Part shown: positions 1-16,466 of the stretch, piece by piece
Layout: every line of letters begins with the position of its first letter
Numbering within the stretch: the stretch's first letter is position 1
From: Zygnema circumcarinatum SAG 698-1b
Taxonomy: Eukaryota; Plantae; Zygnematophyceae
DNA: 64,000 nucleotides
Direction of reading: 5' to 3'
Assembly (NCBI GenBank): GCA_037447605.1
Contig: CM074804.1
Span: forward strand, 3,139,909-3,203,908
Translations under genes and position numbers: made by a program
Notes under the pieces: generated by a model
The model's input: the letters and a program-made list of their open reading frames with translations, nothing else
What the model was told of the DNA's origin: nothing
The model's database searches: none

Positions 1-901
1 ATTCAACAGGTTGGATGGAGTTAGAAACTGAATCGACGAATTTTTAATTGAAGTTGAACCATGGTCCATAAGTGTCCATGAAGCTTTTATGGGAGATTGG
101 GAACATTTGGCTTAAATCACTTATGAGGTCATGCCTTGAATATGGCTCTGAGTAAAGAAATTTTTGACTGGAACAATGCCTAAAGGTTATAAAGTTATGA
201 AGTTGCACCATTATAGCGCACCCTTACATATTGTGAAGTCCATCATTGTCATTGTTCATTTGATTAACAACAAAGAAACAAAGACTTTGACAACATGAAA
301 TTATATCAAAAAACATAAATGAGTCATTTCTCATGTGCTTAGGTATTTTGTCGATGCTTTCCCAAGTGAGCGTTCGAAGGCCTACTCCTAATCGTCCGTT
401 GCTCCTCGCCCTTCACTTCAACAGAAATTGAAGTCCTGTACTTTCACAATTACGACTTTGTTCCTTGAGAGTGCGAGGTGCCGACGAAACATTGGAGAGG
501 AATTTCCTGGACTGGTGATAGATTTCAGAACAAGAAATTTCTAAGCCGGTGAGCATGAGGCAGGGGCCATGCGATATGAGCACGAAGTCACTAATTCCTT
601 TATCAACCATTCACTGAAAAAGAATTCACTATAAGACGATTACTTTGTAACTCTCAATCAGCCGCTGTTAGGTTAAGCCCATCACTACCATCCCTGATGC
701 AGAAAAACGAGAACAGAGTTTTTAAAGCTTCAAAAAGCAAGCTCGGCTAGTTATTCTTCTTGAAAGTTTCATGCCACTCACCTGAATCGAGTCCAAAGGT
801 CCTCTCTACGATGTAGATGAGGAAGGATAGCGACCATTGCATCAGCTGTTCACGAAGGCGCGTAAATGTGCTGTGGACAGAGAGATTCTTCCTTATCCTT
901 A

Positions 902-2900
902 TCAAGAGAGAGAAGGAGAAGGCGTAGTCCCACGCAGTTTTCTATGTCGATCAAGAAAGCATTGTGCTAAGTGGCTGAAGCGAATATTCACATCGCCCGC
1001 CGCAGCAAAAAGCTCCATACACTGAATGACTGCCGGCGTAGCAATATCTATTTGAACCGAACAAATTGGGAGGAAACACAGAGTCAGAGAAGACAAAACA
1101 GGCGACGAAAGGCAGTTTGCAAGCAGAAAGTTACTTCATCTTCTAATGGCCACTCAGAGATTTGAAACTCCTAAAACTGGACTCGGATTAGTTACATGAA
1201 AGCATAACCTTCAAGGAGAAGTGTCAGAAGCATTGTTTACCTTTGAAAGTACGTTCACTGTGCAGGTAGTACAAGGTTGTGATGGACGACAGAACCTGGA
1301 AACCCATACATTACATGGTTACTTACCAAGGAAAACAAAACTGCATACTTTCGATCAAAACCTTATTTCCTGCAGGCCATGAAGAGTGGATTATCCTGCA
1401 AAGTTCGGAGAGAGGGAGGGGGGGGGGGGGGGGGGGGGGNNNNNNNNNNGGGGAGGTAATGACTCACAGTATTTTCAACGGGACTGGACAAACACGCAAC
1501 GATTGATGGTATACCGTCGTTTTCCACAATGATTGCGGCATTCTTTGGATCTGTGGAATGGACAGGAAAATACCATGGAGTTCAGTTTTGTGTCTCGCTG
1601 CTTAACACTCCTTAAATTTGGAAGCCAATACAACCCTGAAAGCCAGGTTAACCCAATTCATCTTCAGCTTTCCTACGCTAAGTATTGGTCGGAAAAGAGA
1701 CACAACTTTTGTTCTTGTAGTTGACCAACATTCAAAATCCAATAGCCACCACACTATGTGCAAGAAGTACGTTTCTGTTTCAAACTTTTAGAACAAACCA
1801 CGCCTTCCTCATCTTACCAGGGCAACAGTTGCAAATGCCTCCCATGCCGAATTCTTGAAGTTTTTCATTTGGCTCCGTTAAACAGTCAATGAAGAGGTCC
1901 AACACATGTAGCTGCCACCACACTCAACCAAATCTTGAAACAGTCAGCTGATGAACTATCAAACGTTCAGTGAATCTGGTCGACTCCAGAACATTGAACG
2001 GTGCTTCAGGTCTATTTCTACTTTGCCACTCTTCTCAATCCTACAAAAAAGGAGTCGGTACACAGACACATTTGTGAGGTGCAAAATATACTACATTTCA
2101 TAAAGGATGCTCTCTCGTTTGAAATTTAAGCCTGAATCCGATCCTTCATAAAGGATCTCTTTGGCGCCTGAACATACAATTTTACATCATTGACAACCTC
2201 CGGAAAGGGACCCTTTGGAAACATCATGCAACGTAAAACAGACTTTAGGTCATCCAAAAGTGCTGAAAGGACCGAAGTGGCTTTTTGCAACTAGCAAAAG
2301 ATGGCTTGTGCATACGAAAGATGCCATTACATGAGGCAGGGGCTACCTTAGACTTACTGTACGCAAATGCTCGTAGTTGATGGGGTCATAAGCAAAGTTG
2401 GCAAGGTTAGCGACTATCTGCTCCTTCGCCTCTGCGAACACTACAGAACTGAGGGTTAGGGGAAAGAGCAGGGATGAGAACGGCGGAGGAGAGAGAAAGA
2501 GTGAGAAAGCATACTTTTCGGAGGCACAGGAAAGATGGGCGGAGATCGCTTCCGATCGCAATGCAAAGAATTTCCTAAATGCAGAACATTACTTTCTGAC
2601 CATAAGAATAGACAAAGGACCAGGTGAACTGCGCACCCTCATCTCGTGTAGTCTGAAACTCTGTCACCAGCTCCTGTTGCTCCGATTAATATCCCCAGAA
2701 AATGCAGCAAAGACCAGTCAAAGGAAAATACAATAAGTAACAATTGGAAGAGTGTATCTTGGTATCTTGATAAAAAAAGGGTGATTGCGATCGAAAAGGA
2801 GCAAAGATGACCGTGAGAATGACTGTACTTGTAGATAATCGAAGCGAGGGGTTCCATAGCGTCCTGTTCGCTCCTTGAGCCGCTGTTCTGTACTGAACAT
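902..2900 (-). CDS. ARMC7: Armadillo repeat-containing protein 7-like (7 exons)
   Basis: Exons at about 2829-2900 ([24 protein letters not shown]), 2637-2673 ([11 protein letters not shown]), 2358-2431 ([25 protein letters not shown]), ~1819-1911 ([30 protein letters not shown]), ~1466-1550 ([24 protein letters not shown]), ~1241-1294 ([11 protein letters not shown]) and 902-~1048. All joins are GT-AG and in frame, and the motifs match ARMC7 as recalled. Confidence 0.9.
1440..1449. other. Assembly gap (10 N) inside a poly-G run, in an ARMC7 intron
   Basis: N characters flanked by a G homopolymer. Confidence 0.95.
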
Positions 2901-3316
2901 CAAGGTCACGGTCCCCCTCTCCTCTCTCCCCTTCCCTCTCCCGCTTGCTCTCCTGACCGGCGACTGTATCTCACTTATCGATACTATTTTCAGATACCAC
3001 TCTGCTCTCCTCGCTTTCTTTCTTACAACCCTAACTGGTACACCAGTACGCACTGTAGAATGAACTTCATGAAGGCTGTACGGGAGATCGTCAGATCGAA
3101 ACTGTACAGTAAGGAAGTAAGGAGTCTTTCATCAAACCTGAAAAGGCGCTTTATGAAAAGGTGACTACCGGTATCTCATCTTACGGATTCTCCCTCCTAC
3201 TGCTGCGCCCTTTTTTCTTTTTTTTACTGTAGCATCATCCCAGCATTTAAATACAGCACAGTGTCCCTCCAGCAGGCCCAGTGTCTGCCATATCCATCTC
3301 TCCCCTTGCAGAGACA

Positions 3317-4289
3317 ATGGCAGTCGGTCAGTTCCTTCGCCGTCGACTCCTCCTTCATCAACAACGGCATTCTTCCTCAGCTATCTTCAAGCGAGCCCTC
3401 TCTCGTCACGCTGGCTCTCAAGGAGACGATGGCAACTTCGCCGGTGAGATTTGATGACAAACTTTTCTTTGTGTCACAGAATTTGTGAGCTTGCCTTCGT
3501 CAGCGAGTGAAGGGTGAACAAAGGACCTTCAAAATGGAGGTGAAAGGACGAGAATGCCTGGAACCATAGCTTTTAGTGAAGAATGCGGTGCGATCTTAGT
3601 ACGAAAGGGTGAAATGGAGTCGAAAACTACATTGAGTAGTCGTAAGTTCTTAACTGTGCAAATCTTAACTTGCAAGTGCTTCAAAATTGACACACCAAAT
3701 TGAGAACTTGCAAACCTCAACTGCTTTTTTTCGATTCTGCTAAAGAACCTTTCCATTTATACACTCGTCAGAAACTCAATTTCCTTCCTCAGCAAGAGGT
3801 GCAATTTCCAACGCCCAGATTAAACAGAATGAAGTTTGAAAATATGTGTACTTAATAGCTCCACCTGGAAATTAATAACTGTAGATTGAGAGACAGAAGC
3901 CCGGGAGGCAGCTGGTGGCAAGTACTTCACTGCCCTCCAATTGCAGTTGAAGCGGCTTTTTAAAAGGAGAGTGGTGTCCCGAAAGAGGACATCACTAGGT
4001 AGGGAGTTTCAGTTTATACTAAAGGCGAATGCGAACAAGCAAGCTCTTTTTATTCTTTTTTTAGGTGGTAGGTGTGAAGTTCGTTGGTATAAACGTTATA
4101 TTGGTCTGATTTTCCTGTTGCACAGCGACAAGAGTACCATACATTGGCGCATACTCGCCTGCCAGCTCTTTTTTTGAGCAAGACTTCGCGAGGCTGTCGT
4201 GTGAGCTCTTCAGTTCCTCCGGAATGGCTGGGCACTTTTATTCGACTTGGGCCCAACCCAAGTCCCCTCCCTTTCGAGAAGCCTCTGAG
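3317..4289 (+). CDS. 5' exons encoding a transit-peptide-like N-terminus plus a carotenoid-cleavage-dioxygenase (CCD/RPE65 family) N-terminal fragment; probably the first exons of the downstream Rieske gene
   Basis: Exon 3317-3443 (MAVGQFLRRRLLLHQQRHSSSAIFKRALSRHAGSQGDDGNFA, donor GTGAG) plus exon 4166-4289 gives GNFA-ALFLSKTSRGCRVSSSVPPEWLGTFIR-LGPNP. These are the CCD GNFAP and RxGPNP motifs at CCD-like spacing. The frame stops at TGA 4291-4293 unless it is spliced at 4289. Confidence 0.55.
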
Positions 4290-4715
4290 GTGATTTTGGC
4301 TTTGCACAGACTTTGGCGCTTCAAAGTGTTCATAGGGTAAGCAAATGAATCAACAGGGATTGAAATTCATTTTTTGCAGTACCGGTGTTATCTAGGCCCT
4401 AGGGCCATTTGCTGTTTTGCAGGGAGTTCGACAGTTGTTTGTTTCAGCAGACAGTTGTTTTTTGTTTTTACAGCAATGCAGAACATGCTCAGATCCCTAA
4501 CTTTTCTGATCAAAGCTTCCAAGACAATAGATAGGATGAGATTCCATTGAAGGCTGACATAGTGACTTCGCTAGGCGTAGCATGCGTTGAACATAAACGT
4601 GACCCCTTCTTTGAGTTATAAATATTTTTTTTTGTTGCGAAGAAGAGTGATTTAGCACGCTTTTAGAGGCTCTTTCAAGCTCTTTACTCAAGTGTTTGCT
4701 TCACAATTCCACCAG

Positions 4716-7700
4716 GTCCCAGTGACAGAAAACTTTCTGGCAGCCCTGGAAGGCAGTCTTCAGCCAGACTTTGACCCCAGGTAACAATCCTGCAGGGGCA
4801 GACACCTCTCCTGGAGATCTGCATACACGCAGATGCGAATAGGGGCTGCAAGATAGGGAGCCGCAAGCGTTGAGAAATTCCCTGCTCCTGCTTGCAGCCG
4901 TCATGGGATTCTGGGCCTTTGAAGCGGTGCAGCCTTTACGATGGAGAGGGATGGCCTCCTCCCCCCGCGGTGTATCTCAACCCTGCGGGTGAGATTCTGT
5001 TTCAAATTGTGGAAGTGCTCTAGTCACTAGAAAGTCCAATTAGTGGTCACTGAGCAAAAGTGTATGGCTAACAATAGTGAGCTCACGATTCACTGTTCAT
5101 TAAAGAGGCTTGTCGCGGATTACTACATGGTGCTTATCGTAGTTTGTGCCGACGTAGACCTGCTACTATGTGGATGTGGATTACAGCGCAGACTCCTCAA
5201 ACTCTCACCTCTAACAAATGCAAGTTATGGCCGGTTCGATGTGTGCTTGCAGTGGCAGAAGCAGAGATGCAGAAAGTGTTTTGGCATTCCTGGCAAGTGG
5301 TAGGCAGCAAAGTGCAAGTGGAGAGCCCCGGGGACTACTTCACTGGGGACATTGGGGCCCTCCGCTTTGTGGTCTGCAGGTGTGCCTCTCCCTCCTCCCC
5401 GCCAATGTGCCGACAAAGGAGCAGCTTCACTTTATGGCTATGGATAGATGCATACTTAGACATTTCACTTTATGGCTATGGATAGATGCATACTTAGAAA
5501 TTTCACTTTATGGCTATGGATAGATGCATACAGTACTTAGAAACTTCGACTTTGACAGTGCAGCCGACGCAGTCCCTTGATTCCGCGATTGGCCGCGCGT
5601 GTGACAGGGATGGCGCGGGCAAGCTGCAGGCTTTCCACAACGTCTGCAGGCACCACGCAGCCGCGGTAGCCAATGGGGAGGGCCGCTGCGACCGCTTCGT
5701 GTGCCCCTATCACGGCTGGACGTACAGCCTCGACGGCCGACTGCAGCGGGCCACTCGCCTGAGCGGCATCAAGGTGGTGCTCGTAGCCGTCCACTGTGCA
5801 CGCATTGACCCCGTCAGAGTAACTGCCACCTGTAGGGCGAGGATTCTACTTCTACAGAGCAATCGCAACACACTGCAGAACTTCTGCTAGCAGTGCGCAT
5901 GGCTGTGTGTCGACGAAGCCAACGAGTAACGACGGGGCTAAGAGTTAGTGTTCAAGTTGACAATCCTCTCACTTTGAAGTGTTTTTTTCGCAGAACTTCT
6001 CCCCTCGTGACTATGGGCTTGTGGCGATCCCGCGAGTTGGCCTTTGCGGCCCCCTCGTTCTCATGCACGTGGAGGCAGTGTTGGGGGGTGCTAAGTCCCC
6101 CGCTCCGCAGGGCGAGGCAGCAAAGCAGTCCGCCGTTGCGAGTGAAGAGGAGATTTGCAAAGAGTGGATGGACGACTATAAGGGGCTTCCGCCCTTTGGT
6201 AATCTCCCTCATGTAAAGCATCTGGCGATGAAGCAATGGGAGGTGGTACGTTCTTACAGACCCATGAAGAGACGCTGTTTAGGGGCTTTCTTTCTTTTTA
6301 GGGGTGGCGGGCTGGCTAATTGACTAAGAGTAAAGATGACTAAGTGCTGACTTCGAGGTCTGTGCTTTCTGGACTTGGGAGAACTGTTGCAGAACTGCAA
6401 CTGGAAGGTGCTTGTGGACTCATTCTTAGGCCTTTCTTACAGCAATACTTCAGCAAGTCAAGTTGCCTCGATCAATTCCATACAGGTCAGACCACTTCTT
6501 TTCCTTCAGTTTTTCCTCCTTTTCCTTTTGTTTTGTTGCATTAGCTCCATCTCTCAGGTGTACTCCAGAGGGTGTCACCCGCACCCTTCAGCAGGCACCT
6601 CCATATGAAACCACTTGACAGTTTTGTCAATGCCCCCCCTGCAGAATGCCCCTCAAATGAGAGTTGTTGAAGCAAGCGGAGCGGCCATTGCTGGCGACAA
6701 AGAGACGTTCAATTTCTCTGGTGCAGCGCATGCCTTCAATTTTCCTAATTTCTTTGCCAGCAGGTGCGCGCTGCTGCCTAACGGAACGGACGCACACCGT
6801 CCTTCACTCGGTCGAGATAAGACTGCGTTTTGCCCGCTTCTGTAATGGAGTTTCTTGCCACGTGGATTGACATGTATGGGCGTTGGTCTCTTTGTCAAGG
6901 ATTCAGCTGGCAAGGTAAAGCAAGGTAGGCATGCATGGAAAGCTTTCTGTGAGGCTTTCAGAGGCCTTCTTATGCCTGGTCCTCTGCACTACAGTCAAAT
7001 TTGTAGATGTTGCAATATTTCTTAGTATGTGGGAGTTAAAAGCAACTGGCGTGTTGGTTTGGTGGAAATGAGGCTGTCTGTTTCAAAGTGATTGAGCATG
7101 TCGTCGGGGAAAGTGGCATACATGGCGGAACAGAAGGGGTTTCCTGTAGTAGCCACGGGTTACCTGCTGAGTTGTATAGTGCGCTTTGCGAGTGCTTCCT
7201 TTTCTGTCAAGAGAAAGGGGGATGGGAGTCGTCAAACATGCGTGGTTCTTGAAGAGAAGAAAAGCAGTCTCTGATTCGCTTACCACCTTTTTCTCCGCAG
7301 ACAGTAATACTGTAAGATATGGGGATTCTATCGAATGCTTGCTATTTGAACACCAGCCTTACAGCCTAGCGGAATTCACAACGGCCAGTCTATGACGATC
7401 ATTGCTTAGCTAGGAAATCCGTCTGCGTGACAATGTTGTGAAGAATGGTTGAGGGGCATTGCAGGTACGGACCCTGGCTTTGTACGAACACCATTCTGCC
7501 AATAGCTGCTGAAGAATCTCTCATTACTCAAAACTGTTATATTGAGGAGACTTGCGCAATTGACTCCAGAGGGCAGTACATAGAAAGATGTCTGGTCGCC
7601 CAGCAGGAGGTACTTGGCTCAAACTTCCAAATGTGCAGGATGCATGGGCCCATGCCAATATCATGAAGCCTATACTTTCTACCTTCCCTAACCTCATGCT

Positions 7701-7914
7701 CAACCGTAAATTCATTACAACTTTTGGAGTTACAGTAGACATGACCATGTGATAGTGCTGTCTCCTGGGACTGACACGTGTGCAGGTGGTCAGTGAACAA
7801 GCGCGTCTGTGTGAGGAGCTGCAACGGCATGTCAACTCAGCAACGTACGCTCCCATCAGAACATGCGCTAACCAAAAGTTTCACCGACAGCTGCGTCAGC
7901 ATTTAAGCAGTTGA
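4716..7914 (+). CDS. Choline monooxygenase-like Rieske protein with intact Rieske cluster motif but no mononuclear Fe ligands; 5' end uncertain (likely ATG 3317)
   Basis: Exons at 4716(or 4667)-4780, 4933-4988 (join reads FDPSLYDGEGWPPPPAVYLNP), 5253-~5379 (VFWHSWQVVG..PGDYFTG), 5608-5773 (AFHNVCRHH..FVCPYHGWTY), 5994-6246, 6393-6485 (NCNWKVLVDSFL..), ~6644-6763 (AFNFPNFFASR), ~7465-7610 (YGPWLCTN) and 7786-7914 (LCEELQRH..FHRQLRQHLSS*). Order and spacing match plant CMO. Confidence 0.88.
5426..5543. repeat. Intronic tandem repeat, 3 x 38 bp (TTCACTTTATGGCTATGGATAGATGCATACTTAGAnAT)
   Basis: Units start at 5426, 5464 and 5502. The third unit has a 4-bp insertion. There are no spacers. Confidence 0.95.
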
Positions 7915-9390
7915 AGCGACGGTTTTGTAGGCAGTGGAACGCCTTGAAGTGAAAGTCAAATCCAGAGTGTATGTATTCGGGGCATATATATCTGTCTTGT
8001 AGTGTATGGTAATGTAATGAAGATATGTGATCGTGAGCAAGTTAGGATCAGACAGCTAATATACGAAAGTGACCATAGGCGCCTGCGCCAGTCCGAGGAC
8101 CACCCCACCGCGTATCTCTCTTCGGGTTCGTCCATGCAGTGAACTGTTAATGTCAGCAGGGACGCAGTACCTGGCACACGAATAACTTGTGGTTTGCCAG
8201 GTCACACATTTAGTCAGCCGGCCAGCACCAGGGGGCTTCGAAGTCGGTTTTTCCTTTAGATGCCAGGCCGGCGCTATTTTGCTGATGCTCGTCTCAGTGA
8301 GGTTTCACATGCGATCAAAATTAGTGACCACACATGCCCCCCTTCGTTCCATAATCTCGCACGGCCAATGCGCAAGTTCTCATAGATCGACATCGGACCT
8401 TCCATTTCGTTCCACTTCCATTTTCATTCCTTTTCCGTTTTTCCTTTCATTTGCCAATGAGCAGGCCCTCATTCGTGAAAAGGGACCCGTAAAAAAAGCA
8501 TGGAACACTGCAGTCTAACTGAGATGAAAGAAAAAACGAAAGAATGAAATGACAGTCAAGAAACTGTTCTGGAAGCAGCGGCCAGAGTTCATATTGTTAC
8601 CCAAGTGCACGCGACACTTGCCTGCCGGCAAGAGCCGCATGTGGCGTATAGCTATTCGTATGTACATGCTACTTATGAATCCACTTACACCCCCCCCGAC
8701 CTCCCGATCCTACCAGCAGAAACACACAAAGGGGACTGGACATTCCCCCCACATCCCCCCAAAAAAACCTTTAAGCATCCAAGTGACCATCTCTCCCCCC
8801 CCACCCTTTGTACCCTTCTCTCCCTGCTTCACCTTCTTCCTGTACAAGCTCGGAGGAGCCGAGACTTACCCTATTCAAGCACTAAAACTGGTGATGCAGA
8901 GTGAGTCTTTTCATACCTCCCGGCATCCATTGGCCTCCTATAGGCTGCTGATTCAATGCAATCCGAATTCTTCTATACATATCAGCCCAAAGAGGATAAT
9001 GTGGGGAAGGAAGCAGACGTCCGAATCACAGGCACTCGGCGTTGGCGGGACATTGCTTCCGTCAGGCGAACCATTTGCACCTTCAGCTGGTTGATTCTCT
9101 GTATTCACAACAACCGTGTAAGCCTATTGAAATTAGAGATGATCTGCGACATGGACCGGCTGGATTCACAGTGACTAGGGCCAACAAATCATACAGCATT
9201 TATCAACCGGTTGGAGGCAGCTGGGTGCCTTCCTTCTGAGTCTCTTCTATGTGCAGAAAAAGGACGGCAGCAACCAAAGGCATGCTCCAAAAAAAATGTC
9301 AGCAAAAAGAAAGCATTTGCCTTCGGTTCAAAGTCACAACACATGAGAGCCAGTTCGTCAACATGGTCATGCCAGGAGACAGACACCTCT

Positions 9391-12341
9391 CTAAGCAGGG
9401 AGGTGTACAGTCCAGTCAACAAGCTCTTTCAATTGTACTGTGGACCTATATGAATGATCGAACTAAGTGGTAAGAATGTAGGGTATGAAAGATGGAGACT
9501 GATGTACAGAAATTATAGCCAGAAAGTGTTTTACCAAGAGCTACATGTCTCTGCATACGTGCAAAACATGTCTACTTGCAGTCGGATCATTGTCTGAAGG
9601 ATGCAACGAGTGGAATGAGTATCAAGTAAGAACTTCAGAAAGGTTTTGTTACACACGAAATTGCACCACCTACGACAAATCGGACGTCAATCTGAGCACA
9701 AATTGGACAATCAGGCAGTTATCAAAAGGTTAGAAACGAAAAAGAACATACCTCCTCACGCTTCCTCAGCAACAAGTGCAACTGCTCGTTCCGACGCCGC
9801 TCCAGCTGCCACCTCTGAGCAAGAAAAACAAGACCTACAACTGCCGCAGCTAGAGCTGTAGCCCAAAGGGCGCCCTGCTGCTCCTCTAGGCCTGCCCAGA
9901 TTCTTCTAACTAACCCTCCTCGCTCACTCCACCAAGTTTCTCCTAGACTAAGGCTGAGCCAGCTTGACCGTTGTAAGCCGCTTCTAGGCCTGTCTTGGTT
10001 CCTGTCACTCTGTGTCCTCTCCTCACCCTCGAGTGAACTATTTTCCCCTTGTACAATTCTGCCTTGAAATCCTTCGGCCAGAGATTCCCTTGGCAGACCC
10101 AAAAGGTTTCCATTTCCCTCCCCACTTCGCGTGCCAATACGGTCAGCGTCACGGGCAACCCTGCTGCTTTCTTGCGGTCCACTTTCAGATCCGAGACTAT
10201 CATCGGAGTCAAGTGATGAAAAGGCGTCATCAGGCGAATCCTCTGCAGGTGGATTCTTTTGCACGTTAGACACGTCGCCAGTTACAGATGGACCAGATTC
10301 TCCTGGTGGAACAAGTGTCCAGCTGTGTGATCCACAATCTCCTCCAGGCGGAAGTCTTTGGGGAATATGGGACGTTGGCCCAAGGAACATGCTGCCAGGT
10401 GGCAGAGATGAAGTAGATAAGTTGCCACCGGTGGACGAGGCAGTGCCCATGAAAGAAACAGTCCCAGCAGGTAGTCTCACTTGCCAACTCTCTCGGCCAA
10501 AAGTCTCGCTCAAATAAGCATTGAAATTCGCCATCCTCTCACTTTCATTACCCAAATAGCTGTGTCCAATTGCGTCAAATGGCTCTGTACTTGACCCTAC
10601 CCATCCAGATACCGCCATAGGATGCACAACATTTGATGAATCGCCCCTGCCTGGCTGCTGGGAATTTCCAGTTGGCAGTGTGCTCAGAGATGAGGTGAAG
10701 GACGACCACATATGTTCAGCGCCAACTGACTGGCCTTCCTGCTGCTGGCCAAAATCACCCAACTGAGCGCTACTCAAGTTGGAAGTGTTGGCAGTAACTC
10801 CAGCAGCCGATACGGCAAGCATGGGTGGGCCAGAAGCAGAAGCAGAACCAGATGCTTGAAGTTCCCGTTGCCACATCACAAACATGGGGCTACTTGCCGG
10901 TGGCGATGCTGCTGACGGCTGGTGTGACTCGGAATCAGCAAGACCTGAAATAGGATGAGCTCCTGCTGAGCTGGACCCTCCTCGACCAGCAACTTCCCCA
11001 ACGAGAGACCCTGCAGGAGTACGTGATGGAGATGGCCAAAGCATCCGAGGCTCGGATGCATCAAAATGCGCTGAATCGACAAGGCTGACTCCAAGACCTC
11101 CAAGTGCAATGACGCTCCTAGAAGGGGACGACACGAAGGAGGATGAAGAGTCGACCCTTAACCCAGCCATTGACGAATTGAGGCTGACCTGCAAGTTGCA
11201 AAGAGTTCGAGATAAAATGAGTATATTGCACGTCGTGCAAGAGAAGAAGGCGAAAGACTTTGTGTATTATTATTCCATCGTCTAGTCAGCCTTAAACTTG
11301 GTTCATTCGCTGAATGAACATCAAAAGGAGAAACGCTCACTTCACATTCAGGCCGACCGCCTAAATCATATTGACAGATAAGGACTAAGGAAGCAAATTT
11401 GGATCGATGCAATTGGCTCCAAGAGTGGGCATTTAGGACGAATGCACTGCACAATGCACTTCTCGACAATGCTCACCTGAGAAAGGCTCAACAATTCCCA
11501 TTCCTGGGAACCCGGCATAGGCTGACCATTTTCAGGTTTGCCAGCTTCAACATCACCCCCATCAATTTTGCTAGACGGAGTTGCACAAGCGTCAGTGGCG
11601 GTTTCCGGCAGTCGCAATGCTGCTGGCGAGGTTGAAGCAATATGTACATTGTCTTCTGTATGAACAGAACTTCCGGCTCCTGCAGGTCCAACAGTGGGCC
11701 AGACTGCTTCAGTTTCAAGTTGTGAGATGATTATGGACCAACTTTATTGTTGGAGACATCAGTAATAGACCAAACATGTTGAACTCAGACGGTCAAACTT
11801 CAAAACGTTGGAGGCTTTACATTAAAAGGATGCGGAACATCCGTAACGAATGGTTTATGAAAATGCAAAGACAACAATGATGATGACATAAAGGATAAAG
11901 ACATCTTGTCCTTGGCAGAACAAACCAATTTGATGAAGAAAAAACTTAACAGCCGTTCAGAGATTCAGAGACGCGGTTCAGCAGTGAAGACAATTGCAAG
12001 TCGCGTCATCTGTGTAGTCTAAAATTGGGCAGAATGCACCTAGTCGCTGGTGATTTTCAGGCTCCAGTTTCGACCCAGCAGGGAAACACAATCAAACTAA
12101 AACAAGCTCTCCAAATAGAGCGAGAGTTCGGACATGACGATCCAATTATTGCAAAAAACACCGGCAAGACTACTGCATATACTACAAGCTGGTCAGCATA
12201 CTACAAGCTCTCCAACCGTCCAACCTCTCAAGCAAAATGCCGTTCACACAAGAAAGATAGCAGCTGAAGCACACCTGCGGGAGCATGTGTCTCGCCAATG
12301 GCTCCATCATTGTTTCCGTCACTTCGTTGGCCTCCCGCCAT
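9391..12341 (-). CDS. ATG8-interacting protein ATI1/ATI2-like selective autophagy receptor (3' end uncertain)
   Basis: ATG at 12341 (MAGGQRSDG.., phase-1 join), then an exon ending at ~11478 containing SQEWELLSLSQ (W-x-x-L AIM). The large exon 9752-11188 is a low-complexity S/G/P region followed by WW..LWATALAAAVVGLVFLAQRWQLER, a single TM segment typical of ATI proteins. The last two small exons (to stop 9391) are tentative. A non-coding exon lies upstream with a donor at ~12647. Confidence 0.75.
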
Positions 12342-13027
12342 GGCAAATCCTTGTTTCCTTCAAAGTCCAAGAACAGCAATTCTGGCCAGAACTATTCTGC
12401 CAGAACATAACATTAACCCGCACCTGATATGAATCTCGAGAACCAACTGCAGTCATCCAGTAAAACCAAGTCACGCAAGCTGCAACTAAACTTCCAGGAG
12501 AAAGGCGCTTAAATCGACAGCGAAACACTAGAACAAGCTCAGAAAGAACCCGTGCCTCTTTTTTTCAGCACCGTCTTTCTCGCTGCTAAGATATTTTCCA
12601 TTGCAAAACGGCATGTCCAGCAGGAAAGCGTCCAGAAGTACATGCTCACCTGCAGGGAAGGCGAGCGAGCAGACGCTTCGCCTTGGTGGTCATGCCATGG
12701 CCGGGCGGCTTGGCTAGGAAAGGCGAGTCTTGCTGACGAAGGGCTAAATTGCTCCGTGTGAACAGGGCAACGCCCTCTTCTCTCCAGTGGGAACACTTCG
12801 ATGGATCTGGATCCGCCAACAGACAAAACCAGATTGGAGCGAGGTCAGCGCCAGTGAGAACGCCCAGCGGATAGAACCGGATCACCTCCAAGAAATGTGT
12901 GAACGGGAAGCGGGCTTTATTTTTCTTGTGTGAACGGGGGCAGGTGCTGGGGCTCAAATGAACAGAGGGCAAAGAAGCTCGTCGAGGTTTGTAATTAGCT
13001 CGTGTGGAGGTCTGAAAGAAGTGCATT

Positions 13028-13104
13028 GGCATTGGTCTCACGATGGCGATGCCGTCAAATGCACATGGGAAACGACTAAGTTTAGAACCAAGGTGAACCG
13101 GTCA
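13028..13104 (-). mobile_element. Dispersed repeat copy 1 (3' end of a non-LTR retroelement / SINE-like family)
   Basis: GGCATTGGTCTCACGATGGCGATGCCGTCAAATGCACATG..GAACCAAGGTGAACCGGTCA matches the copies at 41624, 42643, 42858 and (reverse complement) 60127-60203. Confidence 0.75.
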
Positions 13105-13516
13105 AGGGACGCTTTGAGCTGCCTTCGTAAAAGTAAGCGAAGATGTGAAGGAACGGATTGAGTGCTTCGCTTTAGAAATGACGATGACCGCGCCTATAAC
13201 TCTGCCACATTTCAGCAAGAGGGACTTCAATCGCATGGCCGACAAACTTGTTTCATACTAAACAAACGTAGGGCTCCTTGATTGAATAACTTGTTTGAAC
13301 AAGTTAAAGCAAATGAAGTGTATCGTACATACAATACAAGACCAATTGAACAATTCTCGGGCCCGAAAGCTACTTACTATAATGTCTCTCTAAACGACAG
13401 GTCAACGGCCTTCTGGAGACAATTACATTACAATACACGGTGATGTCCTAACTGTACACGACCTTTTCACAGTTTCCAGAGAAGCCTGCCCGACACCCTA
13501 TAGGCCTGAGCTGCAT

Positions 13517-16466
13517 TCAGCAGAGACCTGGGAACTCGTCCTCGTCAGCCGCGAGGAGCAGGCTGGGCAGCATCCCCTTGGCAGCGCCATCATGGGGCAG
13601 GAGACTCGGAGTGATGAGAACACGAAAACAGCGCCGAAGTTTGGGCTGAGAAAAGCTACTTGGCGGCCCTGTGGTGTCGTCCATGACGTCCAGCTCCTGC
13701 AAGCGCAACGCAATGCAGCTGAATTGACCGCAATATCAGGGTCAACTGAAGGTTAGCTGACAAAAATGCATCTCGACTGCTGCACCGGCATGAAAATAGA
13801 TTGCAAAGCTGATCTGCTTTGCTTGCCAGGAAGGAACTAAAGTGTTGCTACCTCTCAAGAGTCAAACAAAAGAGTAACGAGACGTTGAGCCATACCTGAT
13901 ACAATCGACGAATGGACTTCAAGAGTGGTGCATCTTCCTCCGAGCCCTGCACCTCAGCAAGTGCGAGAGAGGCCAGCCCTGCCTGAAGACGGCGCCGAAG
14001 GCCATAGCCAAGTACCACATTGCTTCTGCAAGGTCTCCAATATGCACCATAAGACTAGATAGATTCTAGTTTTCTGCCCCTGTGCAAATGACCGCCGGCT
14101 TGCCAGATGCCCTCGGTATGTTGAATGGATCTGAAACAAGGCAGAAACATACCGAAACGAAATCGCCCCTTTGTCGTACAATGTCGGTGTAGCTGAAATA
14201 GCTGTCGATCTGGCACAATTCCCACATCATCATGCAGCATCAGAGTACAAAATCTAGAATGGAAAGCCAGCGTAAAGGAAACAACAAAGGACCATTGGGT
14301 GCTGGATGCTAACAGACACTTAACACAACAATTAAAACCACACTTGCAATGCATTGGCATTGCATTGCATTGCATTGGCATGCTTCCTCTTGGCTGTTTC
14401 TTAAGTCTGAAACAGCCAAGAGGAAGATGCAGATGTGGCAGATGGGTATGTGCCATATGGAAGCTTCGGCAAATGAGAGAAATGTTGCATTCACCTAGCC
14501 CTCTCCAACATGACTTCGAACTGCAAAAAACTGCAGTGGTTCGCAAGTAGCTTGAGCCAGCGCTTATATACATTCCACTGTCGTACAACCTGGAGCCACA
14601 GCTTCCTCCCGTCCAATGCCTCCTCTTCGCTAAAACCAATCCCCAGCCGACCCATCTTGTCCTGCTCCGTAAGTGTCCACTGCAGATCAATTGCATCCAT
14701 GGCTCGCCTCTTTCGACCTTCACGTAGAGGAGTAAGCAATCCTCCGACATCATTTCTATGCCAACAATTCTGCCTGTCTTCGCAAGGCTTCCCTTCCATA
14801 ACTCGAGCTGACGTTTCGGTGTCGGCTTTCGCCTCATCATAGCCCACAACCTCCTTTCCTTTCTTTCGCACTATGCCAACTGCTCCAACGTTTTTATTGA
14901 TCTCCAAATTCTCCTTGAATTCAGAACGCAGCAGCTCAGCAATGCGCTCCGCTCGGTCTGCAAATGCAACTGCAAATGCCTCATAAAGGAGGCTCCAGTT
15001 GCAGGCAGTGAGTTTCTTTACGACCTTCTTCATAGTTGCAGAGCTATGTGTATCCTCCTCTGACAAACTACTACCAGCGTTCCACCATTCGTCAAGTGCT
15101 GCACGGACAAACTGGTGTCCCTTCCTCAAGACCAAAAAGCGTTGGCCTATGTCATCAGCCAACCGATTGCTCTTATACCAGATGCGCCTGTAAACCCGCA
15201 CAGAAGTAGCTTATAGGAAGTGTAAGTAGCATGTTAACTCCTAACGATTGATTGTTCATAGTGGCTGAGTTACAGTTGAATCAGGTAGATTCACTAGCCT
15301 ATGAGCAAGATCCATTTTGTCTATGTTACTTTTCTTACAACGCTAACAATAACTTTGTGCTGATGGATGTGTATCCGGCCACCTTCAACTAACAAAAGCT
15401 CAGTGAATCTTTCTCTTCCCTGATTGCTCAGTACAATGTTTTCATTTCGCATCTACGAGGAGTTTGAGCGATCGTATGCATTCGCTACCTCGAATCATTG
15501 TGTTAAAACGTTCTGCCTGGGTCACCAAAAGTAATTTGTGGAAACTGCGATCAGTTCTATTTGCTGTTTATCAGTATTCAGTTCCATGTCAGCAAATCAG
15601 ATAAATTCACGACACCTTGCAATCTTGCAGTGTTCCAAACATCGATTCTAAAGAGAGCTTGAACCTTCAGCTTACATAGTACCTGGAAAGATTCTGCGGT
15701 CGCTCCTTCTCAAGGGGCGAACCACGTTTCAATATAGGCTCCCATAGATCCTCCTTACTCGCCAACTGGCGGCATATCTTACTCACAGACCTGTACACAT
15801 GATGTACACGTTTGCTACATTCACTTCCAATAAATCAAGACGAAGGTCAAAGTACCAATTGAAATGGAGATGCTTACAGCAACCTCAGTTCCTGAAAACA
15901 TCTGGAGAAATACTTACAAAACAACTAGAGCCCTGGTCGAATTGAAAATGTTCACATTTTTACCTGAAGGAGAAGAGGTCGGCAGCGTTCAACTGACTGA
16001 GAATCACTGTAAGAGTCTCCTCTGGCAGCTGGAGCAAAAAAGGTCTGCCGTTCTTTGGCCCATCTTGCCATAGCGGCCAAGGCGCCTCGTTTCTCTTGCT
16101 ACTGGAACTGCAGGTGGAGGATGCCTGCTGTGGAATGACAGGCGACGAATGCTTTGAAGAAGTCTTGCAAAGGCGCAAGTCCCAGCCCGGGAACAGAAAG
16201 GTGAGGTGAGGGGCAGGAGCCAGGGCAGTACCATTTGCAGAGCTTGTAGACTTTGCTTCCCTCAAACTGTGTAGACTAGTGGAGCATGGCTTTATGGATT
16301 TGGGCCCTTCCATGTCAACATGCCTGTGAAGAATTTGGGGGGCGAAGAGTGGAGAATCTCCAGAGCCAGCTGCAAAGAGAGCAGCATCAAGAGCCGCTTC
16401 TGCTGTTGCCTCGTCGAAGTGATTCTCCTCACTTACAAACGGCATGACATCCCCTGGAGACGCCAT
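13517..16466 (-). CDS. F-box protein with C-terminal cullin-repeat-1-like helical domain (6 exons)
   Basis: ATG at 16466. F-box LLQLPEETLTVILSQLNAADLFSFR|SVSKICRQLASKEDLW is split by an intron. Later exons are 14495-~15189, ~14144-14200, 13953-14025 and 13517-~13698, and all joins are in frame. The C-terminal part reads NWSLLYEAFAVAF..LWLQVVRQWNVYKRWLKLL..TPTLYDKGAISFRSNVV..LRRRLQAGL. Confidence 0.8.

Follow-up and report, generated by a model that had tools for sequence, protein, structure and literature searches.

We analyzed a gene on the + strand (3300-7914) of a 64,000-nucleotide stretch of the genome of Zygnema circumcarinatum SAG 698-1b (Zygnematophyceae; assembly GCA_037447605.1, contig CM074804.1, positions 3,139,909 to 3,203,908 of the forward strand). 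This whole stretch is hereafter called the window, and all coordinates refer to it. The multi-exon gene encodes a protein of 480 amino acids with an intact open reading frame (ORF). Aligned with choline monooxygenases (CMOs), this protein keeps the Rieske [2Fe-2S] ligands and has lost the ligands of the catalytic mononuclear iron. We consider it very probable that the gene encodes a maintained non-catalytic Rieske protein derived from CMO. An earlier reading of the letters of the window (hereafter the sequence-only reading) had suggested such a protein. Its suggestion is now supported by accurate splicing, an orthologue that shares the loss, a rate of nonsynonymous substitution (dN) far below that of synonymous substitution (dS), and the absence of an exon that carries the ligands. 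The catalytic residues are lost, the gene is expressed, and it is under purifying selection; the protein is a pseudoenzyme in this sense. The overall explanation, namely, a streptophyte pseudo-oxygenase that derives from a CMO1-type protein and may act as an electron donor or regulator, appears reasonably probable.

Public RNA data confirm both the transcription of the gene and its predicted splicing. Contigs from the public RNA runs X1, X2, and X6, which represent three studies, were aligned to positions 3000-8400 and matched the window without a single differing letter. Eleven GT..AG joints in the RNA agreed with the exon borders read from the sequence, which gives 11 coding exons and one exon in the 5' untranslated region (UTR). 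The sequence-only reading, in which splice sites and frame were preserved over at least nine exons, was correct on the splice sites and frame; its exon count was too low. The ORF begins with ATG at 3317 and ends with TGA at 7912-7914; both 5' splice forms have an in-frame stop upstream of this ATG. RNA depth was approximately 25-57 over exons versus 0-16 over introns. Five or six public RNA runs of the same organism each contained 56-68% of the sampled words of the window.

The Rieske half is as strictly conserved as that of active members of the family. The three-frame translation of the exon at 5608-5773 includes FHNVCRHHAAAVANGEGRCDRFVCPYHGW, and the motif C-x-H-x(15-17)-C-x2-H is intact, with CRHH at 5645-5656 and CPYH at 5702-5713. 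The cluster ligands are Cys193 and His195 (5645-5653) and Cys212 and His215 (5702-5713). Pfam PF00355 (Rieske) matched this exon with an E value of 1.1e-13, and its best sequence matches in PDB were Stc2 and CntA, which are quaternary-ammonium Rieske monooxygenases (E 2e-11). HMMER, run across the library with the Rieske exon as query, and a word-indexed search together yielded a family set of 269 members from a protein collection that does not contain the window protein itself. The canonical set comprises the 147 members of these 269 that are full-length and carry both canonical motifs. We defined near-invariant columns as those at least 95% conserved among the canonical proteins; there were 65, with 25 in the Rieske half and 40 in the catalytic half. 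The window protein kept all 25 in the Rieske half and 18 of the 40 in the catalytic half. The intact CRHH..CPYH motif that had been read from the sequence was, therefore, borne out by the translation, the Pfam match, and the near-invariant columns.

The catalytic iron site is lost. We numbered the ligands according to the assignment in spinach CMO2 (SoCMO2; PMC6157903). Carrillo-Campos et al. 2018 (PMC6157903) reported that the Rieske ligands, His287, His292, and Asp398 (SoCMO2), and the electron-transfer Asp were totally conserved in all CMOs analysed. The exon at 6393-6485, which is constitutive in the RNA contigs, reads NCNWKVLVDSFLGLSYSNTSASQVASINSIQ, with the segment DSFLGLSYSNTSAS at 6417-6458. 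The canonical NWKVFCDNYLDGGYHVPYAH was found in 147 of 147 canonical proteins; its counterpart in the window protein is NWKVLVDSFLGLSYSNTSAS. The bridging (electron-transfer) Asp of DNYLDGG is replaced by Gly332, leaving neither Asp nor Glu at this position. His287 is replaced by Ser336 and Tyr281 by Phe. His292 is either replaced by Ser (ungapped alignment) or falls within a deletion of approximately 13 residues (MAFFT alignment), and the segment contains no His under either alignment. The third ligand, Asp398 (canonical ..VQxED..), is replaced by Gln443 (7798-7800) in VVSEQA. The protein thus lacks a 2-His-1-carboxylate facial triad. The replacements of the bridging Asp by Gly and of ED by EQ, which had been proposed before, were both recovered in the alignment with the 147 canonical proteins. 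The proposed change of both His residues to Ser held for His287, and for His292 in the ungapped alignment only. The protein is firmly a CMO-like derivative, yet it lacks two features that define Rieske oxygenases.

The sequence-only reading had also allowed for an alternative exon that might restore the ligands. Neither the RNA joints nor a frame scan revealed an alternative or hidden exon that supplies an iron-ligand motif, and [DE]-x2-3-H-x4-5-H did not occur in any + strand frame of 3000-8400. The sole alternative joint uses a donor at 6915; it adds 151 nt, shifts the frame to a stop near 6842, and introduces no ligand motif. In run X2, the depth was 11 at this joint and 7.6 at the canonical joint. 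The resulting isoform is probably truncated and unproductive. Having lost the bridging Asp and every ligand of the mononuclear iron, the protein is predicted to be incapable of O2 activation at the canonical site. The loss of these ligands would also exclude oxygenase chemistry on choline or another substrate.

The same state was found in another organism. P0001 was the top match of the HMMER search with the Rieske exon and forms a 90% cluster with P0270 (full-length, 415 amino acids) and P0271; all three derive from Logan transcript contigs and are, therefore, expressed. The match between P0001 and the spliced window protein (E 6.7e-84) ranked above that of every canonical CMO. In the ligand columns, this orthologue has DVHLKNSHNINVC and ..ITEEL: Lys takes the place of the bridging Asp and Asn that of the first His, the second His is Cys or absent, and the third ligand Asp is replaced by Glu in the pairwise alignment. 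The search for expressed orthologues that the sequence-only reading had called for thus yielded one that lost the same ligand columns through different replacements. Five derived residues are common to both proteins (Tyr to Trp317, Gly to Ser334, Tyr to His379, Met to Phe387, and Ser to Gln436) and almost never occur in canonical members. These shared residues point to one ancestral change of state rather than two recent accidents. Since a distant orthologue has the same state together with shared derived residues, the loss of the ligands appears to be old and the gene appears to have been retained since. GC content at third codon positions of the coding sequence was 34% in P0270 versus 60% in the window gene. 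Searches with full-length P0001, with its C-terminal half (which found only itself), and with the window exon at 5994-6245 did not reveal further orthologues.

Homology to CMO proteins spans the full length (phmmer E 5.6e-69 to P0008, with an alignment through the C-terminus). In an IQ-TREE phylogeny, the window protein and its orthologue formed a clade (100/99), the stem of which measured 1.65 substitutions per site. This pair was placed within the streptophyte CMO clade, which has 98/96 support and comprises 22 rows with the window protein counted, and outside the embryophytes (99/93). It adjoined Mesotaenium P0195, a position that is unsure because the branch is long. This placement in the tree assigns the window protein to the streptophyte CMO/CMO-like subfamily and suggests a streptophyte alga as its source.

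The two halves of the protein have evolved at different rates. Identity between the window protein and canonical CMOs was 55-63% in the Rieske half, the same range as for canonical pairs at that depth, and 30-32% in the catalytic half, in which canonical pairs have 57-65%. The window protein and its orthologue are 71% identical over the Rieske half and 31% identical over the catalytic half; for the latter, the 3465 canonical pairs with comparable Rieske identity have a median of 75% (5th percentile, 65%). P0270 kept 24 of the 25 near-invariant columns in the Rieske half and 14 of the 40 in the catalytic half, and the N-Y-L-D-G-G-Y-H neighbourhood is lost entirely in both proteins. The dN between the two orthologues was 0.22 in the Rieske half and 0.63 in the C-terminal half, with saturated dS. 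NG86, LWL85, and YN00 give no dN/dS under saturation, and we report only raw dN and the maximum-likelihood omega (0.01-0.13), the values of which are rough because dS is saturated. Judging from these rates, the Rieske half is under full purifying selection, and the constraint on the C-terminal half is much weaker and non-zero. The sequence-only reading had linked a simple pseudogene to a dN/dS near 1 and to orthologues that do not share the loss; the dN obtained was far below the saturated dS, and the orthologue shares the loss.

The catalytic-type domain appears to retain the signature of its fold. Single exons of this half did not match Pfam, a result that is uninformative because the pieces are short and diverged. 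Pfam and fold analyses of the second domain were performed on P0270 as a proxy for the spliced window protein. The Pfam score of the second domain of P0270 was 23.8 bits, just below the cut-off of 24.9; a canonical Mesotaenium CMO scored 115.7. The AlphaFold model of P0270 had a mean predicted local distance difference test (pLDDT) score of 75.5. Values exceeded 90 in the Rieske domain and in the beta-sheet and C-terminal helix of the second domain. Confidence was low in the N-terminal 72 residues (pLDDT <50) and at the former metal site (314-318 and 331-341). Foldseek matched the model to CntA and Stc2 across both domains (324-410 columns, E 2e-20, TM 0.58/0.66). Furthermore, protein-language (Atlas) features of the C-terminal half of P0270 resembled those of Ring_hydroxyl_A clusters (score 0.93).

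The Rieske cluster of one subunit of an alpha3 Rieske oxygenase hands its electron to the iron site of the subunit next to it (PMC6157903). Since electrons cross from subunit to subunit in this way, a protein whose Rieske centre is live and whose iron site is dead could donate electrons to, or modulate, a competent paralogue in a mixed trimer. The window protein presumably still binds a [2Fe-2S] cluster that ferredoxin may reduce, and it probably still forms an alpha3-type oligomer via its C-terminal domain. In such an oligomer, the C-terminal half, which drifts fast, would be mainly a scaffold. Given a maintained non-catalytic protein, we tentatively prefer a mixed oligomer in which it donates electrons or regulates, a reading that falls short of being probable. 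On the same premise, a stand-alone redox carrier or sensor is rather doubtful, and the remaining probability falls to other roles.

A stand-alone protein, as a homotrimer or monomer, would either carry electrons to an unrelated acceptor or be a redox or ligand sensor that employs its helix-grip (SRPBCC-type) pocket, with no partner from the CMO family. Conservation of the Rieske half at the normal rate of the family, the absence of the iron site, the predicted persistence of the C-terminal fold, and the lack of a known partner are all consistent with this role. However, the ligand pocket of a sensor should be conserved, whereas the catalytic half is 31% identical between the orthologues and truncated in P0270. 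Carriers among the Rieske ferredoxins are normally small and have a single domain, unlike the window protein, and the retention of approximately 240 scaffold residues suggests that oligomer contacts matter. We regard the stand-alone role as unlikely overall. A transcribed pseudogene or slowly decaying gene, the ORF of which survived by chance or under weak residual constraint, may explain why the catalytic half changed approximately 2.4-fold faster than the Rieske half (the median ratio of canonical pairs is 0.93), why the orthologue is truncated at its C-terminus, and why one run contains an unproductive splice isoform. However, intact ORFs of 480 and 415 amino acids persist in two lineages between which synonymous sites are saturated, no near-invariant column of the Rieske half was changed in the window protein, the dN of this half is far below dS, and all 11 splice sites are accurately used. 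Decay of the gene is, therefore, very improbable.

The protein may still be an oxygenase that uses non-canonical ligands (His379, Glu442, or Ser/Asn/Gln residues) or another cofactor at the old site. The derived His379 is common to both orthologues, both keep the Glu before the lost Asp, and two His residues of P0270 lie close to the former motif. However, the motif segment of the window protein has no His at all, and the residues in the ligand columns differ between the orthologues (Gly/Lys, Ser/Asn, and Gln/Glu in the pairwise and first MAFFT alignments). Different replacements at every ligand column are what unconstrained sites would show. Both proteins have also lost the bridging carboxylate for electron transfer between the centres, together with its near-invariant N-Y-L-D-G-G surroundings, and we consider a cryptic oxygenase to be highly improbable. 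Such a loss may also be imitated by an error in assembly or sequencing, by a wrongly chosen exon, or by overlooking an alternative exon or RNA edit that brings the ligands back; the sequence-only reading was made without tools, and a run of N marks an assembly gap near 1440. This possibility is effectively refuted: the RNA contigs of three studies matched the window with no differences and included the exon at 6393-6485 constitutively, there is no hidden exon with the motif, and an independent orthologue has the same loss.

Several observations weigh against a maintained protein with the proposed role. None of the sampled words were present in three RNA runs of 2017 with the same species label, and expression may, therefore, be conditional. 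The degenerate form was found in only two lineages in the databases searched. The ORF of P0270 (L001, 458-1393) ends with ITEELRSLAEN; its last approximately 30 residues (YAP...HxF), which are present in the window protein and canonical CMOs, are gone. The C-terminal half is still diverging, with 31% identity between the orthologues, and this divergence and the truncation of P0270 could reflect a shrinking role of the domain or, possibly, the slow decay of that half. The roughness of the omega values belongs to the same side.

A further version of the mixed-oligomer reading, which we consider quite unlikely, is complementary loss. The two metal centres of an ancestral homotrimer would have been split between paralogues, with this gene keeping only the Rieske cluster. 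The partner paralogue would have only the catalytic iron site, and the two half-dead proteins would form an obligate, fully active heterotrimer. A Rieske-less CMO was not present among the 269 collected proteins, as expected for a set gathered through the Rieske domain. No choline-handling genes were recognisable by eye in the open frames of 1-3200 and 8000-13600.

The closest known systems are the plant CMO and CMO1-type 'CMO-like' proteins (cd03541 and cd08883). They share with the window protein the two-domain architecture, the Rieske motif CxH..CxxH, and the landmarks NWK, PNF, RYGPW, LCE, and YAP; moreover, the N-terminal extension of the window protein resembles a transit peptide, as in plant CMO-like proteins. 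The window protein differs from them in the replacement of the Asp and three iron ligands and in the change of 22 of the 40 near-invariant columns in the catalytic half. To our knowledge, most CMO1 proteins have no known substrate. CntA (6Y8J and 6ZGP) and Stc2 (3VCA, stachydrine demethylase) were the best PDB matches to the Rieske exon and the best fold matches to the model of P0270. Unlike the window protein, both have a complete facial triad and bridging carboxylate and are active as alpha3 enzymes. Sequence identity to them is approximately 17-23%, and the PDB sequence matches end with the Rieske half.

The N7-demethylase NdmC/NdmD/NdmE of Pseudomonas putida CBB5 offers a precedent for two metal centres on different polypeptides. 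NdmC has non-heme iron and no Rieske cluster, which NdmD supplies in trans (PMC4408171). By analogy, the window protein would be the mirror image of NdmC, with a Rieske centre and no iron site. However, the NdmCDE system is bacterial, its Rieske domain is fused to a reductase and not carried by a dead oxygenase paralogue, and the relation is at the superfamily level only. Any partner of the window protein is putative. Pseudoenzymes in general, such as pseudokinases and the dead subunits of hetero-oligomers, show the same loss of catalytic residues with expression and purifying selection. The window protein differs from them in that one of its two cofactor sites is fully conserved. Full-text literature searches did not reveal a described pseudoenzyme in the Rieske oxygenase family.

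The features of the gene are summarized in Table 1.

Table 1. Exons, alternative exon form, and untranslated regions of the Rieske gene in the window
Feature	Position	Strand	Remarks
5' UTR exon	3000..3160	+	3000 is the edge of the mapped region; joint 3158->3310 refined to GT..AG
Coding exon 1	3312..3443	+	aa 1-43; ATG 3317; RNA joints
Coding exon 2	4126..4289	+	aa 43-97; lineage-specific N-terminal extension; RNA joints
Coding exon 3	4716..4780	+	aa 98-119; RNA joints
Coding exon 4	4933..4988	+	aa 119-138; similarity to CMO starts here (WPPPPAVYLNPA vs TPPSSWYTDP)
Coding exon 5	5253..5379	+	aa 138-180; opening part of the Rieske domain
Coding exon 6	5608..5773	+	aa 180-235; Rieske [2Fe-2S] ligand exon; PF00355 and PDB matches
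Coding exon 7	5994..6245	+	aa 236-319; end of the Rieske half, variable linker, start of the catalytic-type domain
Coding exon 8	6393..6485	+	aa 320-350; NCNWKV, then the degenerate iron motif DSFLGLSYSNTSAS
Coding exon 9	6645..6763	+	aa 351-390; contains AHAFNFPNF with His379 and Phe387
Exon 9 extension, alternative donor	6764..6914	+	GT at 6915; run X2 only; joint 6912->7463
Coding exon 10	7465..7609	+	aa 390-438; RYGPW..TN..P of the catalytic-domain beta-sheet
Coding exon 11	7786..7914	+	aa 439-480 and TGA; C-terminal helix VVSEQARLCEELQR with Gln443
3' UTR	7915..8400	+	RNA contigs extend from 7784 past 8400

The exons within 3317-4988 encode residues 1-138 of the Rieske protein, with which they share one spliced mRNA and ORF. 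The N-terminus encoded by exon 1 is rich in Arg and Ser and has few acidic residues, a composition that resembles an organelle-targeting peptide and suggests targeting. Residues 1-138 look like a targeting peptide followed by a lineage-specific extension, which is probably disordered. The exons at 3317-3442 and 4126-4287 did not match Pfam at E <= 1. We also considered 3317-4988 as a fragment of a carotenoid-cleavage dioxygenase; this assignment was unsupported, the two exons tested (3317-3442 and 4126-4287) having no Pfam match.

At the 5' end, the intron at 3161-3311 was spliced in run X1 and retained in one X6 contig. An X6 contig was unspliced from approximately 730 nt upstream of 3000 through 3442 (window 2268-3442, approximately) and continued into the spliced gene. 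RNA depth over 3000-3360 exceeded that over the gene. The upstream contig suggests either that the 5' UTR is long and retains an intron or that a neighbouring transcript overlaps. A minus-strand open frame lies at 2346-2588, inside the region of this contig. The intron directly upstream of the Rieske exon contains 2.8 copies of a 38-bp unit, TTCACTTTATGGCTATGGATAGATGCATACTTAGAAAT, with 98% identity (5426-5531). Elsewhere in the window, the assembly gap spans approximately 1425-1450, with a run of N preceded by a poly-G/GGN stretch. On the - strand, 9725-11266 is a single open frame of 514 codons, the product of which is rich in Ser, Gly, and Pro, of low complexity, and has a C-terminal hydrophobic stretch.

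Rieske oxygenases have been studied as strictly two-centre enzymes, and the window protein indicates that the Rieske half may be selected alone. It offers a natural system for investigating electron transfer between subunits, mixed trimers, and the origin of pseudoenzyme subunits. If complementary loss were true, the gene would represent a eukaryotic, paralogue-based counterpart of NdmC/NdmD and a rare documented case of the subfunctionalisation of cofactor sites, of textbook quality. The present results also bear on the function of the CMO1-type proteins that are widespread in the green lineage.

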